The notes beneath the pieces were generated by a model that worked only from the letters and a program-made list of their open reading frames with translations, did no database searches and was not told where the DNA came from. The position numbers were made by a program, and so were the translations under genes. Below are positions 5,905 through 49,300 of a stretch of 64,000 nt of DNA, in pieces; position 1 is the stretch's first letter, and each line of letters starts with the position of its first letter. Source of the DNA: Paragordius varius (taxonomy: Eukaryota > Animalia > Nematomorpha); assembly GCA_964247055.1 (NCBI GenBank), contig OZ176056.1:3906001-3970000 (forward strand), given 5' to 3'.

Positions 5905-8900
5905 GACACGTTGAATTATATAATTATTTGACTTTAAATTTTTTAAATTAATTACTTCCAAAATATTGATACTTATAAATGTAAATCTTATTAGATTATG
6001 GTTAAATTACTGTTGGGTTCTAAGCCTTTACTGTATGGCTTGCAAAATTGTTTACCACGGTTACCTGTCCCAAAACTGCATGATACTATGAAAAGAGTAT
6101 TTTATATAATTTACTCAAAAAATTTATTTTGTTTTCAGGGATATCTGGAATCGTTATTGTATTACCGTATCTAACTTATTTATAAACTTTTTTGTTAATC
6201 AAAATATATTTTTCCAATAATACCATATTTTGAAATTAAATGACTTTCTGGGGTTTTTAAAAACTATAGTTTTTATCTTTATTTATTAAATGTTAAATTT
6301 TTTTGTTTAATATCAAATCTTTCTTCGTAATTATAGGCACAATTTGTGTTTATTTAAGATTAAGGTCAAATTAATTATGAATTGGATATCAGAATTAGGT
6401 CAAACAACTATTTAATCGTAAATCTTTTATAATATTTTTATATATTTCACCCTTGACCAATTTAAATTCACTGCTGATCAATTCAAATTCACCCTCAAAC
6501 AAATCAAATTTATTTTTAAACAATTCAAATTCACCCCATAAAAATAAATTATGTGTTTTCGGGCTAATATAACTCATCCTTAATATGAATTAACATAGTT
6601 TATCATTTTTCAGTGTCATTTTAATTTTAAACAAAATAACCTCATTTGAAAATATAAAAAGATATGAGCAATTTTTAATCTTAAAAAGACATAATTTATT
6701 TTAGGGTGAATTTTAAATGAAAGTATGAATATAAATTGATAAAGATGAATTTGAATTGATCAAGGTAATTTTGAATAAATGGTATAATTTAGTTTAGAAA
6801 CGGAAATATATAATAAAAAAATTTCGTAACCGAAAAAAATAGTGTTTGTGTTTTAATTCTTTGCTTTCTTTACTCTGAAACAACATTTTTCATTTAAAGC
6901 TTTAATTATGTTTATTTTTTCTAGTATTTAGAAACGGTAAAACCTTTACTTAGTCCAGACCAATATCGGGATATGGAAAGGTTAGCTATTGAGTTTGAAA
7001 GTACTCTCGGTTACAAATTACAGCGATACCTTATTCTTAAATCCTGGTGGTACACAAATTATGTAATAAATATTTTAGCTTATTTTTTATTCAAATCTAT
7101 AATTACTTTTATTTTATTTTTAATAATTTTAATAATGACATATATAGGTTTCAGATTGGTGGGAGGAATATGTATATTTGCGGGGGCGATCTCCGATCAT
7201 GGTGAATAGCAATTATTATGCCATGGTAAATATATATTTTCTGTCTTTTTTTGTTCAAAAATTTACAATTTTTAAAATTCACTAAAAATTTTTTAAAGAA
7301 ACTTTAAAGAATGTTATAGTAAACTAATCAAATATATATGATTAATCTTAGTTTAATATATGAACCATGTGAAATTTATCTAAAAATGTTTAAAAAATAT
7401 TTTTTATAGTGAGAAAATTCGTATTTTGTTTGACGGGTTATGAATGCATTTTCAAATATACCTGTTTTTTTGTCTATATATGTTTTTAACTTGTAATAAA
7501 AAATAAGTCAAAGTAAATATATATAATTTATTTATATTTATTAATTTACTAATTTATTATTAACTGTTTCAAGGATGCACTAAAATACCAGGCGACGAAT
7601 TTACAAGCCCCCAGAGCTGCAAATTGTATACATGCCCTCTTTAAATTTAGACGACTTATATATTACCAAACGCTAAAACCGGTATTATACAGAATATATA
7701 AATATACCATTTACAGTTCAAATTCACCCTTAAACATCCAAATTCACCTTAAAATAAATTATATGATTTTTAAGATTAAAAACTACCTTTAATTAAATTT
7801 TTTAAAAAAGAAATTTTGTGTGTAATCAAAATAATACTGAAAACATAATAAATTTTGCCATAAAAATATATTTAATTTTAATGGTGATTTATATAAGACC
7901 GAAAATTTATAATTTATTTTTAGGGTGAATTTGAATTGTTCGAGGGTGAATTTGAAATGTAAATGGTATATACAAATTTTAAATAGCGTTGCAATTAATT
8001 CTGTTTCTTTATTGTAAATATTGAATTTTTTTTAAAAAAACTACATTTTGCATTTATATAATTAAACTCTTCTTCATTTAGTATATATATATATATATAT
8101 ATATATGTAATTAATGTCATTTTTAACTCATTCTTTACTTATATATCAGTATATTTATTTTTTAAGAGATTTTTTACCACAAAAATTTAAAGGTTTTATT
8201 TTTCACATTGGCTACATATCATATAATTAAATGAATATTTTTATTATAAAAATTTTTAAAATATAATAAATTTTATTTGAATTTATAACTTTAATTTTAA
8301 ATTTAGATAATTTTTCAAGGCACAGTTCCTTTATGCTCACATCAATATGAACGTATGTTTAATACAACACGCATTCCTGGTGTCGATACTGGTTATTATA
8401 TTATATTATAAAAAAATATTTAGATTCGCACTTTAAATTAACTCTGATTTAACTTTTAATTTTGGCAGGAATTTATTTTGGGGCTAGAATAATTTATATA
8501 AATGCTAAATAAATATTATAATTATTAAATACATATGTCTATAAAAATATTCCATAATCATATATTTTTTTAAAAATCTTAAAACAATTATATTTACAGG
8601 ATTACTTTTACAATATTTGGATAACACAGTAGTGTAAACATTGTGGAATTTATTTTGGACTAGAATGGATTGATAAAAATATATTATATCAAGATCAAAA
8701 TATTTTTCCCAAGATAATCCCTAAAATCATAAATTAAAAAAACACATTTAATAAATGCGCACTATTTGTATTAAACCCTTTGGGGCGCTTTGATAACTTT
8801 AAGATTTAAATATTAATTAAATTTTGATGATATTTTCGTAATCTAAAATAATTTATTGTTAAAATAATAAATTTTAATTAATCAATCCTAGAATTATTGA

Positions 8901-14800: not shown

Positions 14801-17800
14801 AAACAAATTTAATGTTGTCAGATAGGAAAAAATTGTAAATTCAGCCACTTGTTCTTTTTTACCCATTGGCTATTGTATTGCTAATCAGTCAAATATAATA
14901 TGAATTAACCAACTTTAAATGTATCATTAATTATTTATATGTTTAGTGTCGGCAAATCATACAAAGTCAATTGGATATTGCCCAGGCTCTTTTGAATGAT
15001 GTCGATATAACATTACTTCGACACGATTATTATGGTAAAGGTTTCATCAAAAGGACTAAACTCAGTCCTGATGCCTACCTACAAATGGCATTACAATTGG
15101 CTTATTACAAAGTTTTTATTTTCCCGAAATTGTTTCCAATGAATTTTTTTGATTCGCTTTACATCTGAACATGTGTTTTTTTGTGTCTGGTATTGGTTTT
15201 AAAGATTTTTGGGAAAAAATTGGCTATTTTTTTCGGTTAAGTGATTTTAACCTTTTTTACAATTTTCAATAGCCTAATTTTTTGATACAATTTAAATAAC
15301 TTGCCAAACACATTTATACATATATATATTAGTAAAATGGTTAAATTAACAAAGCTTAAATTAAATAACACTGGACAACAAATTTTTCTGCCACTCGAGC
15401 TTTTTGCATTTTCTGATATTTACTATCATTTTAACAGTAAATCTGAAATAAAAATTATAACTCGTTGGAAGAATTTTGTATAATTTGATTTTTTTGATTA
15501 TGCGCCCTCTTTATCAAAATTTTACTAAAAAATATTTTTCTTTCAAAATATACAAGTAATGCCCATTTGTAATATATCATTCGAAAGAGTAATAAAAACT
15601 CTATAAAATGCATACTAATATGTTTTACATCGACAGTTAATATTGGACACAAAGAGCGACAAACGCGCGAAGCGAGAGCATTTTTTTAATTATTATATTT
15701 TTAAAACTAATGGATGAAAATAGCTCAAACTTTGTTTAGATGGTGATGAATGTCCAAAAAAGATAATACAAGAAAGTTTTTTTGATTAAAACATTTTTTT
15801 ATTGCTTTTATGTCACTCAAAACAGCCATTTTTAAGTTTTTTGTTTTTTAAAAATTACCATCTCATCAATATTAATTTATTTTCTTTACGAGGCTGATAA
15901 TTTCGAAATTTTAAAGATAAAAACAAAGTTAAAGGTATTTTTTATCTTTTTTAGCCATTATGTAATAAATTTACAGTTATAACTATGCATTTTAGTATCC
16001 ACTAGGCAAAATATTTATGATAATAATAATTTTTATTAAAAAAGCAAACCAAAATTTTTTCAATCATTTTTTTTAAATTAAATACTAATATAACCCTAAT
16101 AAATATATTAAAATAATTTATATGATTTTCAAATTAGTTTGTTTGTAAAAATTCTTGACTTATTTAAGGATTGAAAATTTCGACCATTTAAATCCAAATA
16201 ACTTTTACATCCGATTGATTTAAATGACTTACTACCATTTAAAAGATGCAGTTTTTTGCATTCTTTCGAATGATATAAAATACATGGCTTCATATCTAAA
16301 ACTTTTAATTTTCGAAATTTCGAGTTTAATGTTAAATCGGGGCCAAAAATTATCGATAAACTCTAATATAAAAAATTTTTTGCATGCTAGACCAATTTTC
16401 TTTTCAGATATACTAATTATGTACTTTAATGAAATAAATTTTAAATTCACAAGAATGGCAGTTAAAAATAGTTAAAATTTGTTGTCTAGTGTAATTAATC
16501 ATTATAAAGTGTATAGGTATTAGCTTTAAAAAAAATATTTGAAATCGTAATTCCAGTTCTATAACAAATTTGGAACCATTTTTGCTTTACCAAAATCATT
16601 TCCAAAGTATTTTATGGTGTTTTTTTGTTAGTTGCATGATAATATAAATATATATTATATATATATCATTTACAATAAATTATGTATTTTTTAAGAAAAA
16701 AATTACGTATAATTTATAAAAAATAAAATTACGTTTAAAATTAATAAATACTGGAAAAATAAACTATGCTATAAGAATATATTTCTTTTTATTAATGTGT
16801 TATATTAGTTCGAAAATACTAACATATTTTTAGGGTAAATTTAAATAGTTCAAGGGAGAATTTGATTCGTTTAAGGGTGAATTTGAATTGTAAATAATAT
16901 ATATATATTAATAAAATTTTAGGATAAACACAGATTTGATTTGACTTATGAGGCATCTATGACTCGACTCTTTCGTGAAGGCAGAACCGAAACGGTACGA
17001 ACAGTTTCTCAGGAATCTTGTGAATGGGTTCTCTCCATGTTAAATCCCGAGATTTCGGTAAAAAAATTTTAACTTTTTAAGTTTAAGTTTTTTTTATTAA
17101 AATATAAAAATAGTTTTTTTGTGTTATTGTTAGCGTTTAAATTGGGCCATGATCACAACGTAGTTGTATTTGATTACTAAAATATTTATTAATCTTTATA
17201 CAATGGTTAATTTATAATTATATAAAAATATATATGTATAAAGAACAAGCTGTTCATATATTATTGAAATTAATGTATAAAATTCCACTTTTTACCGATG
17301 TAAATGCCCATTTTTTTATTAAAAGCAAGGATAATTAAATGAAATATTGATTGAAGTAGCAAATTTAAAACAATGCTACTAATTGTAAATCACTAAAGGG
17401 GATTATTATTATATGAATGCTTAAAAAAATCTATGTATAAAATTTGTGAAATATTGTAAAAAAATTTAATAGAGCCTGCGTTTATAAAGATTTATGCCAT
17501 TTTGACTTTAGAATGTCCTTGAACATTTCAAGTTGGTCCTTAAATTATTTAAATTTGGATAACGATAATATTTGCATTTATTTTTTTATTTTATTGTTTT
17601 TTAACCTTCTTTTCTTTATTTATTATATATTTATTGATTTAAAAATAAATTTTTTTATTCAACACTTTTTTTGTTTCAAACTAATTTAACTAATATAAAA
17701 AATAATACCTTACAAATGTTTTTAACAATTAATTGTTAATAATAACCTAGAAAATTTATATATTGTTAATTTACGTGTTTACTTATGAATATAAAAATAT

Positions 17801-20313
17801 TTTTTGAAAAAGTAAAAAAGATATACGGTTTCTGAATGATTAAAAATGATATTGATTTAATAGTTATTGTTAAATAAAGAAAATAGGTTAAAAATGATAA
17901 GAATGAATAATAAACGATTTGATTGATAAAAGTTAAAAACAAAACTAAAATCAAGGACCAACTTAAAATGTTCAAGGACCAACTTGAAGTATTCAAGAAC
18001 CAACTCGAAATGTTAAAGGACCAACTTGAAGTGTTCAAAGACCAACTTGAAATGTTTAGACTTGAAGTGTTCAAAGACCAACTTGAAATGTTTAGACTTG
18101 AAGTGTTCAAGAACTTGAAATGTTCAAGGACACTCTTGAAGTGCAAATGGTATATATTAATCATTTATTTCCAGAATAAAAATGCCATTATTATTGTTTT
18201 TGATTTAAAATTAAGCTAAAATGCTTATATGATAAAAATATAAGTTTTAATATTCGACTTTTATTGTGGTAAAGTTTTTATCAAAAAAAGTGTAAATTTT
18301 GCTACTATATTATAATTATTTTTGATTTGAAACATTTTTTCAGAATCAAGAAAGAGCCCGGCTCCTTAAACGAGCGTGTGAACACCATGTGATGGCTTAC
18401 AAATACGCTATGACTGGGAATGGGATAGACAGACATTTATTTTGTCTTTATGTCCTTTGCAAATATTTCGAACAAAAACAGGTGGCATCACGTCAAAAGA
18501 AACAACATAATAGCAACAATAATAAATTATTGTTGAATAATGCAAAAATTGTGGAAAATAGTGTTAAATCTGATGGAGGACTTTCGACAAATGATATTGG
18601 CACTAAGACTGTTACAGACGAAAAGGAAATGAAAAGTGATGAACACCATTACACATCTGAAGTATAAATATATATGTATATATGTTAGGGTAGTTTTGAC
18701 GAGTTTTTTCGTTTTATTTTTTTGTGACATGTTTTAGTAGTATAAAATGTGTTTGATTTTTAATATCGTCTTAAACGACCATTTTTTTATTGAAACAACA
18801 TTCCTACTTGATATATATGATTTTAACGTTGTTTTGATGAAGATTGGTTATAATATTCTTCTTGCTTTTACGCAAAACAGAAATTTATGGATGACATTAC
18901 AGTGAAAGAATTATCACCTTTTCTTAAAAAAGTCTTGAGTGAACCCTGGAAACTTTCAACTAGTCAGGTATATATTATAATATTTTCCAAAAAAATAAAA
19001 TTTAATATAAATAATCAAGAATAAACCATGATTTTTTACAATAACTTATCGTTTGGAAATGTGAAATACTGAATAAAGATAATTGGTTTATTTGAAAAAA
19101 TAGACGAGTATATGTTTGAAATAATATATATATCTCATTTTTTTATCAGTACTTATGTTTTATATTAATAAATTTTAATTATCTTAATATGTTTTAACCC
19201 TAACTTATCTTAATTATTAGACTACACATTTGAGTGCTGAAAAATTTGATTTCGATACCCATAAACACGTAATATCAGCCGGTGGGGGCTTTGGACCGGT
19301 ATACATAGTTATATAAATTTAATTTCCTTTTTATTTAAAATTGATTTATTAAATACTGATTATTATTCATTTTACTTTTTAACGCTAACAACGCACGGAC
19401 ATTTTTTATAGTGTCCGAAACCGTATTCACTTTTTATTAAATAAATTTCCATATATTATAAGATATATTTAGCTAGCTATTTAAATATAAAAACTGCATA
19501 GCAAAATTCTTAATAACGTATTTTCATATATTAAATAATTTAACCACTTTTTTTAGGAATATATTATTTATGATATAATAGTTTCGAAACTCAAAAATTT
19601 AAAAATAGTCAAGAAAAATGATTTTTTTACATAATATAGGTTGCTGATGACGGATATGGCGTTTCTTATATTATTGCGGGCGAAAATGCAATCTATTTTC
19701 ATATATCTAGCAAAAAAAGCTCTCCCTCTACGGTATTTTTATTATTATTTTAAATATTAATAATTAATGATAAAAATATACTTATTTATTGTCAAAATAT
19801 ATAATATAAATTAATATATCATTTACAGTTCAAATTCACTCTTGAACAATTCAAATTCACCCTACAATATATCAAGGGTTTATTAAGATTAAAAATTATT
19901 ATATTTTTTATGTTTTTAAAAAATAATATTTTTATAAAAATTTAAATAACAATGAAAAAATAATAAACTTCGCCATTAAGATATATTTAATGTTAACGAT
20001 GAGTTATAATAGTCCAATTTATTTTTAGGGTGAATTTGAGTTGTAAATGTTATATATAAAATTATTTACTAACTACAAGTTTTTAAGGTAAACACCATTA
20101 CTTTATTGGAGAGTCTCTGCAAAATAATATGAATATTTATCCGAATCTAGAACACATTACAATTTCATATTTTGCCATATTTTTAATTTAATGTTATTAA
20201 AATTATATTTTTTCCTTGTGGCATTTTAGGATTCTCATCGCTTTAAACAGCACATATCACAAGCTTTGATGGATATGAAAGAGCTTATGGAAACTAACTT
20301 GACTACTAAATGA
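3323..20313 (+). CDS. CPT1: Carnitine O-palmitoyltransferase 1 (mitochondrial outer membrane), 23 coding exons, 839 aa
   Basis: Exons, all GT-AG and phase-consistent: 3323-3463, 4407-4546, 5152-5314, 5995-6096, 6925-7062, 7148-7225, 7574-7681, 8307-8391, 8963-9077, 9634-9714, 11332-11407, 11524-11571, 12191-12298, 12390-12415, 12520-12582, 13352-13439, 14947-15111, 16923-17057, 18344-18661, 18881-18967, 19221-19298, 19640-19732, 20230-20313 (2520 nt). Motifs: [12 protein letters not shown] start, two N-terminal TM segments, [28 protein letters not shown], catalytic [61 protein letters not shown]. Confidence 0.97.
5385..5910. repeat. Imperfect tandem triplication (~180-230 bp units) in CPT1 intron 3, ending in a (TA)n tract
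   Basis: TTTTG(A/C)GTTACTTTT...ATATTTAGGATGTATTTA..ATT...ATAGTG(A/G)ACAC recurs near 5385, 5615 and 5800; (TA)n at 5860-5901. Confidence 0.8.
6440..6786. mobile_element. MITE of the TATACCATTT / AAATTCACCC family (left end decayed)
   Basis: Tandem TTCAAATTCACCC units on the left, inverted GGGTGAATTT units on the right, ends AAATGGTATA. Confidence 0.7.
7703..7972. mobile_element. MITE of the TATACCATTT / AAATTCACCC family (best-preserved copy)
   Basis: TIR TATACCATTTACAGTTCAAATTCACCC ... GGGTGAATTTGAAATGTAAATGGTATATA; lies in CPT1 intron 7. Confidence 0.85.
9231..9430. mobile_element. ~200-bp foldback MITE, copy 1
   Basis: Near-complete palindrome TTAATGGTTGTTTATTTCACAC ... GTGAAATAAGCATCCATTAA; homologous to 23291-23475. 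Confidence 0.75.
10085..11270 (+). mobile_element. Degenerate Penelope-like retroelement fragment (N-terminal region plus start of RT) in CPT1 intron 10
   Basis: Frameshifted peptides [114 protein letters not shown] match the PLE ORF pattern; the RT segment is also present inverted at 10093-10163. Confidence 0.85.
11741..11796. repeat. (TA)n microsatellite (longest of many in the window)
   Basis: About 28 uninterrupted TA units; others near 5860, 8082, 11606, 20975, 27158, 43278. Confidence 0.95.
12774..12969. mobile_element. hAT (Charlie-like) MITE, second copy
   Basis: CAGAAGTGTCCAACA ... TGTTGGACATCCCTG; TCTAAAT occurs in both flanks (TSD-like). Its right junction is tandemly duplicated at ~13120-13290. 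Confidence 0.6.
13620..14742. repeat. Tandem duplication of a ~570-bp unit in CPT1 intron 16
   Basis: ATCTGATTGGAT, CCTATCATCGTCCCTCTATGCTATAAAATTATT, GATTAGGTACTCGATGGTATTTGGT and AGTATGAACATTAATGTT each occur twice in order, ~570 bp apart. Confidence 0.9.
16661..16902. mobile_element. MITE of the TATACCATTT / AAATTCACCC family
   Basis: TATATCATTTACA left end; three GGG(T/A)GAATTT-type units and TTGTAAATAATATA right end; stops ~20 bp before the exon 18 acceptor. Confidence 0.7.
17950..18155. mobile_element. Solo right end of a TATACCATTT-family element with a 21-bp tandem array
   Basis: About 8-9 units of AAGGACCAACTTGAAGTGTTC followed by GTGCAAATGGTATATA; no matching left arm found. Confidence 0.7.
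19815..20054. mobile_element. MITE of the TATACCATTT / AAATTCACCC family
   Basis: TATATCATTTACAGTTCAAATTCAC ... GGGTGAATTTGAGTTGTAAATGTTATA in CPT1 intron 22. Confidence 0.8.
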
Positions 20314-27980: not shown

Positions 27981-30480
27981 ATATACCATTTTTCATGCAA
28001 AAACATCATTTTTTCAACCAAATGCAACATTTTTTCAAGCAAACGCAACATTTTTTCAAGCAAACGCAACATTTTTTCAAGCAAAGACAACAATTTTTCA
28101 AGCAAACGCAACATTTTTTCAAGCAAAGACAACAATTTTTCAAGCAAACGCAACATATTTTCAAGCAAACGCAACAATTTTTCAAGCAAACGCAACATTT
28201 TTTCAAGCAATTACAACATTTTTTCAAGCAAATACAACAATTTTTCAAGCAAACGCAACATTTTTTTCAAGCAAATATAACAAATTTTTTGCACCAATTT
28301 TTTTGTCTTATGACAATTCTATAATTATTTATTCAATCTTAAATTAACGATTAGTGGAATTTTAGCGTTGAATTATTATATTTATTTTTTATTATAAAAT
28401 TATTAATGGTAAAATAATTTCCAAACATTTTAATTTTGCCCTAATATTCTATATATTTTATTTAGATCAACTTTATTTTAATATACAAACATATATTTTA
28501 AATATTTGACTTTTTTAATCTTTTAAATGTATAACCTATGAGTTTCAATATACACTTTTATGCAAACTACTTGCAAAAAATCGAAATAACTAATGCGAGA
28601 ATTATATATTATAAATTATATATATATGTAAAAATATTAATTTATTTTTTGATTAACAATATTAAATATGATTGTATGGGAGGCCCCCAGCAGCGTTTAC
28701 CATATTATTCATCATTTTATTAAAATACTGGTTACAATCATCAGATGTAATAGTTTTTACACCTTCTTCCAGGAGGTCACATATCTGCTGATTATTATTT
28801 GGGTCAGACAACCGCTGACGCACGTATAATTTAATTTTGGAGAACGAAAATTCAATAGGGTTAAGCATGTATGAGTACGGAGACAAGAAGTGACTGCCAT
28901 ACTCAAAACTAGATGCAAAATCCTTTATTGCATCTTTTTTATGGATAGTAGCATTATCCATAAAAAATATTATGTTAATATAATTATTCTCCTTTAGATA
29001 TTCGCATAAAGATATAAAAAATTCATTAAATATATTAGCATTAACGTTTCTCATTGTCTCAACTTTAAAATAAACATATCCTGTACGGCCCATGGCCCCA
29101 ATTAAGGTTATATTACGCCCCCTTGACATGGGGATAACAATGTTTGTCCTGGATCCTCGCTTCGATCTTCCTTGAGATCTGCGTAAATGATTATTCAATC
29201 CAGTTTCATCAATAAATATAATATGTGATGTGGTGGAAATGTTTTTTGTGTACCACAAACTATATTCTTTCCTTAAATTGATACTATTTGGATCATTTAC
29301 TTTATTAATTTCTCTGTGCGTTAATTTTAACGTTATTTTTAACTGAATTAACGCTCGATGGATACTAGAAAGAGATATATTAATATTTTTTTGTTCATAA
29401 ATTAATTGTCTGAGTTCTTTTAGGGTTGTTAGAGGATTAAGCTCAATTATATTTTCTATGAAATCGGTAATGTTTTGGTTTATTTTTAATATTCTTTGAC
29501 CACCACGAGGTTTATCGATAATTTCACCGGCGGTATTAAATTTAGAAACTAGGCTTCGAGCGGTGTTATAGTTGATTTCCAAATCAATAGATACGTTTTT
29601 TATACATTCACCATCAAAACACACCCTTTTGATCAATCTTGTTTTATCTTGAACAGTTATTTTTTTAGTATGATTATTTCTATAACATTAAAATATAATA
29701 TACTGTTTTGACAAATCCATGTACGTATTGAATAATTTTGAAAAAAACCAAGCAGACGAATTTTAAAGTTATAATGTAAATTATTTTTTAAAGATCTAAA
29801 CGCTTTTGTTATTATTTTCAGTATATATGAAAAATGCTTATTTTTTTACTGTTTTTATATTTCATTTGCATTTAATCGAAAATGACAAATATACTAACTT
29901 AAATTGAATCTCAGACTATAAGCTAGTTATTATATTGATTAGTTTGCGTAAAACATATAACTATTTATCTATTTTATCAATTAAAAATAAACTTAAAGGT
30001 TTATATACGTTTAAAAGATTAAAAAAGTCAAATATTTAAAATATATGTTTGTATATTAAAATAAAGTTGATCTAAATAAAATATATAGAATATTAGGGCA
30101 AAATTAAAATGTTTGGAAATTATTTTACCATTAATAATTTTATAATAAAAAATAAATATAATAATTCAACGCTAAAATTCCACTAATCGTTAATTTAAGA
30201 TTGAATAAATAATTATAGAATTGTCATAAGACAAAAAAATTGGTGCAAAAAATTTGTTATATTTGCTTGAAAAAAATGTTGTTTTTGCTTGAAAAATTGT
30301 TGCGTTTGCTTGAAAAAATGTTGTCTTTGCTTGAAAATATGTTGCGTTTGCTTGAAAAAATGTTGCGTTTGCTTTAAAAAATGTTGCGTTTGCTTGAAAA
30401 ATTGTTGTCTTTGCTTGAAAAAATGTTGCGTTTGCTTGAAAAAATGTTGCGTTTGCTTGAAAAAATGATGTTTTTGCATA
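27981..30480 (-). mobile_element. IS630-Tc1-mariner DNA transposon (element A) with ~550-bp inverted arms containing 21-bp tandem arrays
   Basis: Left arm ~27981-28535 is the reverse complement of ~30000-30480; outer parts are arrays of TTTTTCAAGCAAACGCAACAT; left terminus ATATACCATTTTTCATGC; right terminus lacks the last ~14 bp; transposase ORF lies between the arms. Confidence 0.9.
28662..29687 (-). CDS. DD34E transposase (IS630/Tc1-like); reading frame open but no in-frame ATG at its start
   Basis: HTH-type N-terminus (INYNTARSLVSKF..G; ISLSSIHRAL), catalytic IFIDETG, FMDNATIH and LSPYSYMLNPIE with 34 residues between the second D and E. Frame is open 29687-28662; nearest ATG (29688) is one base out of frame. 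Confidence 0.9.
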   Translation of the reverse strand, partial: CYRNNHTKKITVQDKTRLIKRVCFDGECIKNVSIDLEINYNTARSLVSKFNTAGEIIDKPRGGQRILKINQNITDFIENIIELNPLTTLKELRQLIYEQKNINISLSSIHRALIQLKITLKLTHREINKVNDPNSINLRKEYSLWYTKNISTTSHIIFIDETGLNNHLRRSQGRSKRGSRTNIVIPMSRGRNITLIGAMGRTGYVYFKVETMRNVNANIFNEFFISLCEYLKENNYINIIFFMDNATIHKKDAIKDFASSFEYGSHFLSPYSYMLNPIEFSFSKIKLYVRQRLSDPNNNQQICDLLEEGVKTITSDDCNQYFNKMMNNMVNAAGGLPYNHI

Positions 30481-30511
30481 TATATATAATAGGTATAAAT
30501 AAGTATTCTTA

Positions 30512-32274
30512 TATACCATTTTTCATGCAAAAACATCATTTTTTCAACCAAATGCAACATTTTTTCAAGCAAACGCAACATTTTTTCAAGCAAACGCAAC
30601 ATTTTTTCAAGCAAAGACAACAATTTTTCAAGCAAACGCAACATTTTTTAAAGCAAACGCAACATTTTTTCAAGCAAACGCAACATATTTTCAAGCAAAG
30701 ACAACATTTTTTCAAGCAAACGCAACATTTTTTCAAGCAAATACAACATTTTTTCAAGCAAACGCAACAATTTTTCAAGCAAACGCAACATTTTTTTACG
30801 CAACATTTTTTCATCCAACGACAACATTTTTTCAACCAAACGCAACAATTTTTCAAGCAAACGCAACATTTTTTCAACCAAAGGCAACAATTTTTCAAGC
30901 AAACGCAACATTTTTTCAACCAAACGCAACATTTTTTCAACCAAATACAACATTTTTTCATCCAAACGCAACATTTTTTCAAGCAAACGCAACATTTTTT
31001 CAACCAAAGGCAACAATTTTTCAAGCAAACGCAACATTTTTTCAACCAACGACAACATTTTTTCAAGCAAAAACAACAATTTTTTTAGAATAAAAAACCA
31101 TTTTTTTTATTTTAAGACATAATAAATTTAAAGTTAGTGTAAATTTTTAGCGTAGAATTGTGTTTTTTATTGTTTTATCATCAATATTTGATGGTATGAT
31201 TGATTTTCAAACATTTTAATTCAGCCCATAAATTGCATTATTTATTTATAAATATTTTTTTCTTTTACAATTTAAGTTTCACCTAATCAATCTATACTGC
31301 GCTTCAAGATTGTTCTTTTACATTTTAACTTAGTCCTAGAACACTTCAAGTTGATCCTTCAATATTTAATTTTGATTCTACGTTTATTAATGAGGCAATA
31401 AAATATTCCTTATTCAATCATTTAAACCTATTTTTTTATTTAATCTAAACCTTTAAGTGAAAACATTTCTTTCATAAGAACCGTATATCCTTATTATTTT
31501 CTATAAATTAATATTAAAAAATATCTATATTTTGTGGGTTATTGATGGTAATATTTAGTTTAAAACAATAATAAATTTATAATATTGATAAATTATAGAA
31601 AATTTTCAAACAAAGTTGTTTTACTATGAAAATATTAATTTTGATTCAAAAACTAATAAATAGAGATATTATATAGTTTAAATTTAAAAAATAGATAATT
31701 ACACACAAAAATAACGGTTGTATGGAAACTGCAAAAAATGTAAGGAATTTTAAGCGAAGGATAACTTTAAATTTTTAAAGAGAGTCTTAAAGCGCAAATG
31801 TATTGGATAAAAAAAATATTTATAAATAAATAATGCAATTTATGGTCTGAATTAAAATGTTTGAAAATCAATCATACCATCAAATATTGATGATAAAACA
31901 ATAAAAATCATAATTCTACGCTAAAATTAATTTACACTAACTTTAAATTTATTATGTCTTAAAATAAAAAAAATGGTTTTTTATTTTAAAAAAATTGTTG
32001 TTTTTGCTTGAAAAAATGTTGTCGTTGGTTGAAAAAATGTTGCGTTTGGATGAAAAAATGTTGCCTTTGGTTGAAAAAAAGTTGCGTTTGCTTGAAAAAA
32101 TGTTGCGTTTGCTTGAAAAATTGTTGTCTTTGCTTGAAAAAATGTTGCGTTTGCTCGAAAAAATGTTGTCTTTGCTTGAAAAAATGTTGCGTTTGCTTGA
32201 AAAAATGTTGAGTTTGGTTGAAAAAATGTTGCATTTGGTTGAAAAAATGATGTTTTTGCATGAAAAATGGTATA
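30512..32274. mobile_element. Non-autonomous foldback-type relative (element B) with ~750-bp inverted arms and 21-bp arrays
   Basis: TA|TATACCATTTTTCATGCAAAAAC ... GTTTTTGCATGAAAAATGGTATA|TA; arms ~30512-31260 and ~31800-32274; about 26 versus about 13 repeat units; no coding core. Confidence 0.9.
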
Positions 32275-32928: not shown

Positions 32929-34293
32929 ATGGCAAACTGCGTAACATTTAACGATATAGACCGTTACCCTGATATAGCCTATAATGAATTTAATAAATAT
33001 GCCTATGTTGTCCTCTTTGTCCTTGGTTTATTCGGTAATTTTTATGGATTTCGTCTAATCGAATTCCAAATGAATCAGGCTTCGCCTAACTCAATTACGC
33101 CCATTCAATACAGACAAGGGGGCCTGGTGGTGAAAAAAAATTCATTTATTACTGGGTTCTCAAAGTTAAGCACTAACCAATACTTGTTAAAATGGTTTTA
33201 CCTGATAAATTTGATTAATACATTATTAATGGTACCTGCACCCATCCTTCAAATCATGGGAAACGCTGATAGAAATTTGATTTGGGGCACCCGAAGTTGG
33301 AACTTTTATTTGGCCCGTGTCAATTATCTTATTGCAAAAAGTTGGATAAGTTTTGGATTTTTGATTTACATCATATTCTTTGCTAATGAGTTAATTGCAC
33401 ATTTTAAACCGTTTGATTATCGGACGCTTGTTACAAGAAAACGTGTTAATTGGATTCTCATGATTTGTATTGTAGTGTGCTTCTTGTGGCACATTCCAAC
33501 CTTTTTCTGGATGAAAACTCAGATAGCTGATTTATGTGTTAGTAGGAATGACCTTTTAAACATCAAACAGAAACGAGGGTACCGATTTTTTCCACCTACC
33601 ATAAATTTCAATGCATCAAGTATTGCTGTGTGGTTCCATAGAACAGATCCACTTGGTACAAAATCACGGAAACTAAATATTCTTTCGAAAGCATATGAGA
33701 TTACCAAAGAGCTCTGCCTAAAAATCATACCCTTTCTTACCGTTTTCATAGCCAAACTCGTGTTGATTAATAAAAACAGAAAGGCCACGGCAACCATACA
33801 ATCCTACAGTAGTGTGGGTTTATCTAAAAGTCTTACAAACATTTCGGCAGCACAAGAAGTTGGAACCGGGAAGAAATCTAGTAACATTGGGCACGCCATT
33901 AAGCATAAATATAAAGCTAGCCTGAACGCTCTTGTAAATTTTGGACAGACACCGAATGCCCCTAATGTTAGTACACCCTCACCAAATGGCACATGGTATG
34001 CAAGGAAAAAGCAAAAAAACGCTGAAAATTTGAAAACTCTTGTAGTTTTATCGGTCGAATTCGTTTTCCTCTTGTTACCCGTATCATTGATTACTATGGT
34101 GTGGGATTTTATTGCCCCGCACTTGCCCGGAGGCTTAATTGCAACCTGGTTTATTTCTCTTAGTTTGCTGGAATACATTTACGTAACATGTACCTTTTAT
34201 ATCAATGTTCTATTCAATGGTTTATATAGAGAATTGGCTTTGAAATCCTTGAGACAAGATATTTCAATGATCAAAAATTGGTTTCATAGATGA
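32929..34293 (+). CDS. Divergent intronless class A (rhodopsin-like) GPCR, 454 aa; loosely FMRFamide/peptide-receptor-like
   Basis: Seven hydrophobic segments with TM1 LGLFGN, TM3 end ANELIAHFKPF (ERYIAVCHP-like), TM4 W/HIP, TM5 IIPF, TM6 EFVFLLLP, TM7 TFYINVLFNGLYRE (NFxIY..FR-like). Confidence 0.85.
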   Translation: MANCVTFNDIDRYPDIAYNEFNKYAYVVLFVLGLFGNFYGFRLIEFQMNQASPNSITPIQYRQGGLVVKKNSFITGFSKLSTNQYLLKWFYLINLINTLLMVPAPILQIMGNADRNLIWGTRSWNFYLARVNYLIAKSWISFGFLIYIIFFANELIAHFKPFDYRTLVTRKRVNWILMICIVVCFLWHIPTFFWMKTQIADLCVSRNDLLNIKQKRGYRFFPPTINFNASSIAVWFHRTDPLGTKSRKLNILSKAYEITKELCLKIIPFLTVFIAKLVLINKNRKATATIQSYSSVGLSKSLTNISAAQEVGTGKKSSNIGHAIKHKYKASLNALVNFGQTPNAPNVSTPSPNGTWYARKKQKNAENLKTLVVLSVEFVFLLLPVSLITMVWDFIAPHLPGGLIATWFISLSLLEYIYVTCTFYINVLFNGLYRELALKSLRQDISMIKNWFHR

Positions 34294-46300: not shown

Positions 46301-49300
46301 GTTTTGAACATTTGATTTGGTTATTGTCGTTTGATCCTTATCAAGAGATTTTTTCGCAGCCGTTTTTGCATTAATTTTAGATGCGTTATTTGTAATGTTT
46401 AAATCCAAATGTGCGTTAAAAGTTTTTTCTAAGTCCTTAGAAGAATTTTCTTTAGGATCAGAGGTAGAAACAGTTTTTTGATGCCAAAAATCGACGAAAC
46501 CCGCTAAATAATTTTTGGAACCGTCTCGCCATTCCGCCATGCACGAAAGCTTGAAATCTAAAATAAATTGGAATATTTTAGTATAATACCCTTTCTCTTA
46601 AAAGTTTTTGCCAAAAAAACAAGGTTTGAAATCAACAAACTTACTCAATAAAATAGGTTCATCATTGGTTTTTCCATTCTGCTGGGATTGACCTGGTCCT
46701 TGTCCTGTTTCTGTATTAAGTTCAAAAAAATTATTTAATGTAGTTTCTTGATTGTCATCATTAATATTTTTAGTTCCTTTATCACAAGTTTGGAATCGGA
46801 ATAACAGTTGTGAGGGATTTGTACATTTATCCAAATAATTTTGATTTGTAAACGACGTGGCAGACCAAAAATTATTTTGGTCTCGCCTAAGTTCTCCAAT
46901 TTTATCATCAAAAGTTGTAGAGTGTATTAAAGTCTTATCTACATCAAAGCTCTGAGAAAAGTCGGTAAATTGATCGAAATTCTCATTGTTTTTAACATTT
47001 TCTCCGTTACAAACGGTCGTCCCGAAATCACCGGTGTATTGAAAGGTATATCTTTCATCTCCAAATGGGCATTTTATATTGCTGGGGTTAGCTATTAAAG
47101 TTTTTATAAACATAAGAAAAGGAATGAATAAATCTTAATTGAAAGCGTAATATCAATCTGTGAGTCTAAAGAAGCAAGGCGCTATGAATCTATCATATCT
47201 TAACAATACTTCTTATTGTTATAAATTAACCAATTTAATTTTTTTTTATGGAATGTACCAAATACTGATATAGACTTATCTAGAAAATTGGATTTATTTA
47301 TTTTTTATATTTTTTTTATAAAAACTCATAGAAGTTTTAATACCTAACTATTTATATTTCTCATCACAAATATTTTAATAAAGAAATTTCAAAATAAATT
47401 CTACCTCGGAAGAGAGTGTGTAAAAAGGCGTCTCCACCAATTTGATCACAAATGACTTGTAAAGTGTTTTTAGGTCCACAATAACCTATTAAATATATAT
47501 ATATATATTATAAATTGCTTAAAAAATTATTAAATTATTTAAATTTCGAAATAAGAAGTAATTTACTTTCTTTATATTGCAAAACATTGTAATGTTTTTC
47601 GGTGATGAATAGGCATTGGTAACAATTTTGTTCTCTACAAAGGAAATAAATTTTATTTAAAAAAAAGTGTAATTCACCCTTAAACGATTTAAATTTACCC
47701 TTGAACGATTTAAATTCACCCTGAGCAATTCAAATTTACCCTCGAACAATTCGAATTCACAAGATTAAAAATTATTTATATATATTTATATTTTTAAAAA
47801 ATGAAATTTTGTTTATCAAAATAATACTGAAAATATAAATACTATGCAATAAAGATATATTTCATATTAATAATAAGTATATTAGTTCGAAAACACACAA
47901 TATATATTAGGGTAAATTTGAATTGCAAGGGTGAATTTAAATTGTTTGAGGGGAATTTAAACTATGAATGGTAAATTATTAAAAAAATTGGAATCTTCGA
48001 TAAAATAGAAATTATTTCATTTAAGTAATGATCTATCTCTATTTAACATGCCTAAGATATTAATCTGAATTCTTTTATGGTACATTTATGATAAATTTTA
48101 GAAAAAATTCAATGTAAACTGGTTTATATGCGCAATATTAGCTTAAATTAATTTCTTAACCTATTTTATAATTTGCAATATAAACTCCTCATTTTATAAT
48201 TTTAACTAAATTATTTTTTACAAAATTTATCCCTTATTTGTTAGGGCATTCATTAAGTTTAAGATATAAGGCTGGTTTTTTATGTAATTTGATGCTTAGA
48301 GTATAATGGGAAAAATGGATTTTTCAATATATACCTCTATCCAACAATACAATATTAATAATGTCTTAATTACTTAAATCAGGTAAACTTTTATGATGGA
48401 AAAACCAAGGCAGTATTATAATTCTATAAAACAGTAATGATAATTATTGACTCTAATGAATAGATTATTTTAAAGTTAATACGGATTAATTTATGGTGTT
48501 TATGATTAAATTTCATTTTAAATTAGCTTAACTTATGTGTATTTTGTATATATCCTTGATTTTTATTTTTTTAAAAAAGAAAAGGTAATTATCGATCGAT
48601 ATTACAAAAAAAGTATCGAATAGGAAATATATTGTCTCCTCTTTTATCATCAAAGATTATTAAAAATTAAATTATATTAAAAAGTTAATCATTTTAATTT
48701 TCAGATTTGTTTGCCTATAAGTTTGTTTTTATTTTTAGCGATACTATTTATCAAATTTCCCTAGGGAACTATACTATAACGGATTAATTATAGCCAGCAT
48801 TAAAGAAAAGTTAGAGCGCACAATTTTTAATTTATCTCCAGAACAGTTAGGATTTTTATTCGGAATTTTTTCTTTGAAAAAAAAAAGCTTTTAAAGAACG
48901 TAATTGTTTATTTAACCGAAATTTTGGTTATAATTGTTTTATATTTTAAACGTGTTTAAAAGTAATTACTAATCAGAATTCTTATCGCCTATGAAAGAAA
49001 GTTCAAGTGGCTTTTAAACAATTAGTTTTTTATTTTTTTAAATTACAGATAAATGATAAAGGTAACGCTTTAGTAATTTAAATAATTGATTTTTATATTA
49101 ATTTATCTAGCAAAAATTATCCAATATAATATTTTTATTTTATAGGTGGAATACGTGTTGTGCTTTATTCTAGCTGTTAAACAGAGAGTATTAAAAATTT
49201 AGCAAACATTTGTGTTATTTAACTTATCTTTATAATCTAACCCAAATTCTTTTTAAATTTGCTTGGTAGTATGTAGCTGTAAGTTAAATATAAACAATTA

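Follow-up and report, generated by a model that had tools for sequence, protein, structure and literature searches.

Several groups of DNA transposons have long or repetitive ends. The inverted-repeat/direct-repeat (IR/DR) elements of the Tc1/mariner group, which include Sleeping Beauty, Minos, Paris, S, and Bari3, possess long inverted ends with more than one transposase-binding direct repeat; these ends contain 2–3 separated repeats within ~200–250 bp. Long ends are reported for Minos and Tec (PMC7325037). Foldback elements belong mostly to the Mutator superfamily, and Galileo, with its THAP domain, is placed in the P superfamily (PMC4079207, PMC3573991). The internal repeats of Galileo contain additional transposase-binding sites (PMC3688188; PMC4079207), and the target duplications of another foldback element, Tetris, are 8–10 bp long (PMC4079207). 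The ends of IS630 itself measure 20 bp, and one member of its family has been reported with TATA at its ends (PMC11544213). Tc4 of Caenorhabditis elegans is referred to as a Tc1/mariner member whose fold-back structure is unusual (Yuan et al. 1991, cited in PMC11071193); therefore, the foldback layout has a precedent in this superfamily. Tc4 is a DDD element, which inserts at CTNAG and duplicates TNA (PMC11071193). Here, we describe an element of the hairworm Paragordius varius, in which the gene of an IS630/Tc1-type transposase is enclosed by long inverted arms with outer arrays of a 21-bp unit. The element is located in a window of 64,000 bp (C7:3906001–3970000; GC content 21–31%), and the complete genome assembly (110.5 Mb, 44 contigs) was searched for its relatives.

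We regard this element, with a probability of roughly 75%, as an IS630/Tc1-type cut-and-paste transposon from a clade whose terminal inverted repeats are made of 21-bp units counted from a TATA-CCATTT terminus, with these units serving as proposed docking sites for the transposase. The design common to the clade appears, from sequence comparison, to be a conserved cleavage end followed by n contiguous 21-bp units. This interpretation builds on the observed architecture of the element, the linkage of arms and gene, the conservation of period and terminus, the fold and catalytic motif of the enzyme, and the numbers of copies.

The element shares with Tc1/mariner IR/DR elements a cut-and-paste DDE enzyme with a bipartite paired-like domain and, probably, a TA target, with which its TA/TATA junctions are compatible. 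Unlike in IR/DR elements, the repeats are contiguous, follow one another from the terminus onward in exact 21-bp register, and amount to 2–27; also, the protein scores as a member of the IS630 family and resembles Sleeping Beauty and Mos1 only marginally in sequence. Drosophila FB and Galileo are characterised by inverted ends that are long, variable in length, and built from tandem repeats, as well as by numerous gene-less copies, and both traits are present here. The differences from these elements are in the enzyme, which is of the IS630/Tc1 DD34E type with a Pax-like domain and not of the Mutator or P-THAP type, in the TA/TATA junctions, and in the fixed period of 21 bp throughout the clade. 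Bacterial IS630 elements are similar with regard to the IS630-family model match, the DD34E-type spacing, and the probable TA-type target, but the element described here occurs in a eukaryotic genome, has a probable 24-nt intron, and possesses ends of hundreds of bp. In contrast to Tc4, the third catalytic residue is E and the flanks are TATA instead of CTNAG. The long ends of Tc4 are not described as 21-bp tandem arrays in PMC11071193.

Tandem Repeats Finder (TRF) detected two 21-bp arrays that are reverse complements of each other, one at 27989–28275 (13.6 copies, 87% matches, score 425) and one at 30262–30467 (9.8 copies, score 333). A separate unit scan counted 14 units on the left and 10 on the right, all arranged head-to-tail. 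The longest inverted pair, 28060–28533 and 30004–30477, extends over 474 nt with 96% complementarity. In each arm, the array forms the outer portion, and the inner 243 bp are non-repetitive and nearly identical on the two sides (Table 1). An earlier note on this DNA, made from the sequence alone, had described a transposase frame of ~340 codons between inverted arms of ~550 bp with about 13 units on the left and about 10 on the right. The unit numbers agree well with those obtained here, and the frame, located on the minus strand, is open for 341 codons from stop to stop. The arm length proved correct for the left side (27981–28533, 553 bp), while the complete right arm is only 477 bp long (30004–30480). 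The right arm stops at ~30479 in a (TA)n run, and its outermost 9–12 nt, including CCATTT, are missing, a detail overlooked in the earlier note. Within the window, the 34-nt terminus pattern of this family has only three matches, at 27982 (+), 30512 (+), and 32241–32274 (-).

The enzyme was characterized using exon 2, rather than the joined exons 1 and 2, as the query in protein searches. It matched Pfam DDE_3 (E = 5e-22), with additional weak matches to helix-turn-helix (HTH) families, and scored 113 bits against the NCBIfam IS630-family model (cutoff 100), with a match that covers almost the entire length. The catalytic residues are D143, D227, and E262, and their columns are invariant or nearly so in alignments with relatives. 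Direct counting gave 34 residues between D227 and E262, the columns of which are both invariant; the motif is, therefore, DD34E. No transposase was matched in a PDB search with the single sequence, and a profile was required. Profile positions 17–122 matched the paired domains of Pax6/Pax5 (E = 7e-6), and Pfam PAX matches were also obtained for several relatives. The same profile reached Sleeping Beauty (E = 1.7e-3) and Mos1 (E = 5.5e-3) only marginally. The AlphaFold model, with a predicted local distance difference test (pLDDT) value of 77, comprises a pair of three-helix bundles and, after them, an RNase-H-like domain. In Foldseek comparisons, this model matched the whole Mos1 transposase (E = 3e-9) as well as the catalytic domains of Sleeping Beauty and Mos1 (template modelling (TM) scores of 0.65–0.70).

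The closest database proteins share 36–44% identity with the transposase and are mostly unnamed and metagenomic; those with named sources, from the microsporidia Enteropsectra breve (P0010) and Cucumispora dikerogammari (P0025), are annotated as hypothetical proteins. Close sequence kinship to Tc1-like enzymes (Tc1, Sleeping Beauty, and Minos) was not found in the PDB and profile searches. Judged by these comparisons, the protein can be classified as a DD34E enzyme of the IS630/Tc1/mariner superfamily, apparently nearer to IS630 than to Tc1 proper. It carries a Pax-like bipartite HTH DNA-binding domain. The IS630/Tc1-type DD34E assignment made in the earlier note is borne out by Pfam, the NCBIfam model, the residue count, and the fold match.

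The survey of the genome revealed four other copies of this gene with 74–98% DNA identity, all of them decayed or rearranged (Table 1). The same inner arm and 21-bp array are present beside each of the four. The window copy holds the sole intact gene of this family found; these counts are lower bounds. It had been proposed that the transposase and the arms belong to one element, and a search was made for gene copies without arms. None occurred among the four, and the proposal is also supported by the related loci and by 14 of the 16 metagenomic relatives.

Related transposase loci in the genome encode proteins with 36–51% identity to the window enzyme. Flanking tandem arrays were detected at all 29 of these loci (L002–L030), including the decayed copies mentioned above. 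A period of 21 was reported in 66 of 78 TRF rows; the remaining periods are nearly all multiples (42, 43, 63, and 82), and one row has a period of 19. The units are of four types, which correspond to families A (the window element), B, C, and D. Proteins of the three sister families B–D share 45–51% identity with the window enzyme. The B unit is related to the D unit, and the A unit, more distantly, to that of C.

Relatives outside this genome are encoded on 16 metagenomic contigs (35–46% protein identity; sample GC content 27–49%). Arrays with a period of ~21 adjoin the gene in 14 of these 16 relatives, each with its own unit, and the arrays are inverted between the two sides on several contigs that span both ends. 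No 21-bp arrays were found next to the GC-rich bacterial-type matches (GC content >50%) of the metagenome set. The number of units per end is 2–8 in relatives outside the genome; three complete metagenomic elements have a size of ~1.35–1.45 kb with 2–3 units per end. In the members of the clade from Paragordius varius, this number has grown to 8–27. Given the 2–8 units elsewhere, the foldback appearance in this genome is best read as a local expansion of a clade-wide IR-(DR)n design. The foldback architecture claimed in the earlier note is thus correct with regard to the long variable array arms, but it describes a local expansion and not the relatives with 2–8 units.

Two further database entries are worth mentioning. 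Protein P0001, encoded on an ENA contig of 1800 bp, begins with four heptads, which represent a translated 21-bp array. This N-terminus is a gene-calling artefact and marks the same architecture in another organism. The distant relative L108 (Ga0214473_10001768, 28% identity) was set aside; it lies among very long arrays of a 31-bp unit, with up to 50 copies, which run in one direction on either side of the gene and so resemble a surrounding satellite rather than element ends.

TATA precedes CCATTT at most of the inspected family-A ends, with variants at a few, and the base before TATA varies. The TATA-CCATTT terminus is common to families A–D and at least 10 metagenomic elements. The TATA is compatible either with a TA duplication plus an element-encoded TA or with a TATA target. 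In the case of L034, a copy with a neighbour that adjoins the sequence upstream of another family-A element, a single junction was kept, as predicted by both the TA and the TATA model. Among 318 family-A units, 17 of the 21 positions are conserved in more than 90%. Only positions 3, 12, 17, and 18 are variable, without codon periodicity. Positional variants, which recur between copies, occupy the two units at the start and the three at the end of an array, while the middle units vary in number. Alternation of unit variants results in higher-order periods of 42 and 63 bp in some arrays.

With up to three mismatches allowed, the 34-nt family-A terminus was found 104 times in forward and 105 times in reverse orientation in the genome; the reversed control pattern gave no matches in either orientation. 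Most matches form inward-facing pairs at a distance of 1.2–1.5 kb, and at least 100 ends are perfect. Accordingly, ~100 young transposase-less foldback copies are present in the genome. Their termini and arrays are close to those of the window copy, but their inner arms are only 74–86% alike. Array lengths across genomic copies, suggested for comparison in the earlier note, do vary: the fetched family-A copies contain 3 to 26 units per array. The two arms of one element often have equal or near-equal unit numbers, although exceptions exist. One gene-less copy with unequal arrays (26 and 13 units) occupies positions 30512–32274, starting only 31 bp to the right of the window gene copy. In another family-A foldback copy, L042 (C7:6859214–6862395), the 25 bp outside each terminus are nearly identical and inverted, with one mismatch. 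This represents either an inverted repeat that reaches past the usual end or a palindromic target.

The 21-bp units are most likely phased docking sites for the transposase because the enzyme scores as IS630, has a fold like those of Mos1 and Sleeping Beauty, and possesses a Pax-like domain. A paired domain covers about two turns of DNA, as seen in Pax structures such as 6PAX. In the proposed mechanism, one N-terminal Pax-like bipartite HTH domain would dock per unit and, since 21 bp correspond to two helical turns, every site would be exposed on the same face of the DNA. A row of bound transposases would concentrate the enzyme at both ends of the element and aid their pairing (synapsis). Cleavage would occur at the outermost unit, at the conserved outer end, followed by reinsertion at TA. 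Gene-less foldback copies, which retain the terminus and the arrays, would be moved in trans. The number of units would drift via slippage or unequal exchange, and the unit sequence would co-evolve with the DNA-binding domain of each family, so that coexisting families would not mobilise one another. Binding, co-operativity, the position of cleavage, and the TA duplication are the steps that we infer. The window copy is probably unable to excise alone because its right terminus is truncated. It could, however, supply the enzyme in trans to the ~100 foldback copies. The window copy and its neighbour (27982–32274), whose outer ends are intact, could also move together as a composite of 4.3 kb.

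Several points weigh against this overall reading. The evidence for docking is comparative. Families with more similar proteins also tend to have more similar units, measured as best circular similarity (Spearman 0.27 against protein identity, Mantel p 0.006, 17 families), but this signal is modest and comes partly from close pairs. One relative has a 20-bp unit among the 21-bp ones, and conservation of the period could partly reflect inheritance instead of constraint. No clean empty site was found that would discriminate between TA and TATA duplication. The copy that holds the sole intact family-A gene found is defective at its right end. Finally, literature searches yielded no described Tc1/IS630 element with tandem-array ends, in line with the earlier note, whose author did not recognise the combination as a named family, but these searches were made outside Repbase/Dfam and a named equivalent may exist there. 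The literature search on hairworm genomes retrieved superfamily-level counts only.

The main alternative, which we consider unlikely, is that the arrays grew as a neutral or selfish satellite, with only the terminal one or two units being bound and the rest being a by-product of slippage or unequal exchange. Such growth has been proposed similarly for the internal repeats of some foldback elements. It fits with the variation from 3 to 26 units among copies and with the unequal arms in the window (14/10 and 26/13), as well as with the 2–8 units that are sufficient for relatives elsewhere; the 42- and 63-bp higher-order periods suggest block duplications. A neutral satellite, however, is expected to drift in period and to vanish in some lineages. 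All families examined possess arrays, single-unit elements were not encountered, and the period remains 21, with rare 20- or 22-bp units, even though the unit sequence changes by half or more. The strong conservation of 17 of the 21 positions within arrays is also difficult to reconcile with this explanation.

A role of the arrays through the shape of DNA or RNA, that is, bending by T-tracts, hairpin or cruciform arms, or silencing by hairpin RNA, is less probable still. A T6 tract recurs every 21 bp in family A and A/T tracts are in phase in several other families, the arms are near-perfect inverted repeats, and fully palindromic derivatives exist. The period is nevertheless kept without long T-tracts in families B and D and in the GC-richer relatives L073 and L080, and the family-specific units that track the protein would remain unexplained.

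Chance insertion of a Tc1-like element into an unrelated foldback element was rejected as very improbable. Nothing but the layout of the window copy speaks for such nesting, while identical arms flank every other gene copy, the sister families and distant relatives have 21-bp arrays of their own with the same terminus, and the sequence inside the arms has no further set of Tc1-type ends. A coding role of the arrays, in which each 21-bp unit (7 codons) would specify one heptad of a repeat peptide, was likewise rejected and is hardly credible: several frames are open across the arrays and, in the gene call of P0001, four translated units are joined to the N-terminus of the transposase, but the variable unit positions lack a third-codon pattern, AT-rich non-repetitive spacers of ~380 bp (left) and ~530 bp (right) separate array and frame, the arrays come as inverted pairs also in gene-less copies, and the open frames are explained by units without TA/TG stop words.

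The structure of the transposase gene deserves separate description. Counted from the first TTG, the frame of the window copy comprises 324 codons (28662–29636). Exon 2 has no in-frame ATG of its own; splicing of the 24-nt GT-AG segment would join it to 17 nt that begin with an ATG, and the spliced gene would have 344 codons. This segment contains an in-frame TAA and no in-frame ATG is available unless it is removed, so that it is a probable intron. The spliced N-terminus is about as long as those of the shortest homologues, for example P0004. In the decayed family-A copies, the ATG, the GT, or the AG has been lost. Family B seems to need an intron of ~40 nt (upstream of position 5184 in L061) at the place of the family-A intron (after codon 6), and the gene of family C (L064:4674–5678) has an in-frame ATG and no intron. 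Micro-introns at a common position seem to occur in two of the three families of these transposons.

Palindromic derivatives were identified in family B. The palindrome at L061:3419–6669 (C9:1405918–1409168) is composed of two 1589-nt arms with 100% complementarity and 73 nt between them; each arm contains a 9-unit 21-bp array and a complete transposase frame of 341 codons, and the two frames are arranged head to head. An identical layout was verified at C2:4376071–4378389, which suggests that the palindrome itself transposes. The inverted gene pairs at C1:13995472–13997789 and C1:8655264–8657212 suggest the same layout. Partial head-to-head duplication of the gene was also observed in decayed family-A copies (C4:104588–107094).

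Short arrays of sister families occur elsewhere in the window, at 6446–6536, 17515–18092, and 47671–47953. The units are of type B at 6446 and 47671 and of type D at 17951, and a weak inverted partner exists for two of these arrays. The arrays are what remains of gene-less copies. An open reading frame (ORF) of 454 codons to the right of the elements (32929–34293, +) had no Pfam match at E 0.01.

Table 1. Features of the family-A element, its neighbour, and other copies of its gene (window positions unless a contig is given)
Feature	Position	Strand	Basis or remark
TATA abutting the left terminus	27982..27985		TATA target, or TA of the target duplication followed by the first TA of the element
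Left array, 14 units, exact 21-bp register from the terminal CC	27986..28290	+	TRF, unit scan; positional variants at the two outermost units and the last one
Left inner arm, non-repetitive	28291..28533	+	99.6% identical to inverted partner 30004–30246
Transposase exon 2, including stop codon 28662–28664; Pax-like bipartite and DD34E domains	28662..29679	-	Pfam, NCBIfam, fold, profile
Probable 24-nt GT-AG intron	29680..29703	-	inferred from sequence
Transposase exon 1, 17 nt, ATG 29718–29720	29704..29720	-	read from sequence
Right inner arm	30004..30246	-	inverted-repeat pairing
Right array, 10 units, outermost 9–12 nt replaced by a (TA)n run	30247..30479	-	TRF, unit scan
Adjacent transposase-less family-A foldback copy	30512..32274		termini intact on both sides; 26 and 13 array units; ~880-bp middle without long ORF
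Other family-A gene copy	C8:1390381–1392882		decayed or rearranged
Other family-A gene copy	C6:9111163–9112627		decayed or rearranged
Other family-A gene copy	C4:104588–107094		decayed or rearranged
Other family-A gene copy	C6:2989143 onward		decayed or rearranged

Arrays of this kind break assemblies and mislead gene callers, as in the case of P0001. The natural variation in unit number and unit sequence, combined with a conserved cleavage end and a Pax-like domain, offers a system for testing how multiple binding sites tune transposition, and the co-evolution of transposase and site specificity, as well as the way in which paired-type domains read ~20 bp, are also testable. Foldback architecture, so far known mainly from Mutator-like and P-type elements, arises in the IS630/Tc1 group too, and intermediates with 2–8 units are visible. 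The chances are about even that these elements represent an undescribed eukaryotic branch of IS630/Tc1 transposons, defined by the TATA-CCATTT terminus and a row of 21-bp docking sites, in which unit number would act as an evolvable dial of end strength and unit sequence as the means of family recognition. If true, this dial would be set at 2–8 units in most hosts and at 8–27 in Paragordius varius, where it would have given rise to foldback elements and palindromic twin-gene derivatives, and the family-specific units would allow at least four families to coexist in one genome.

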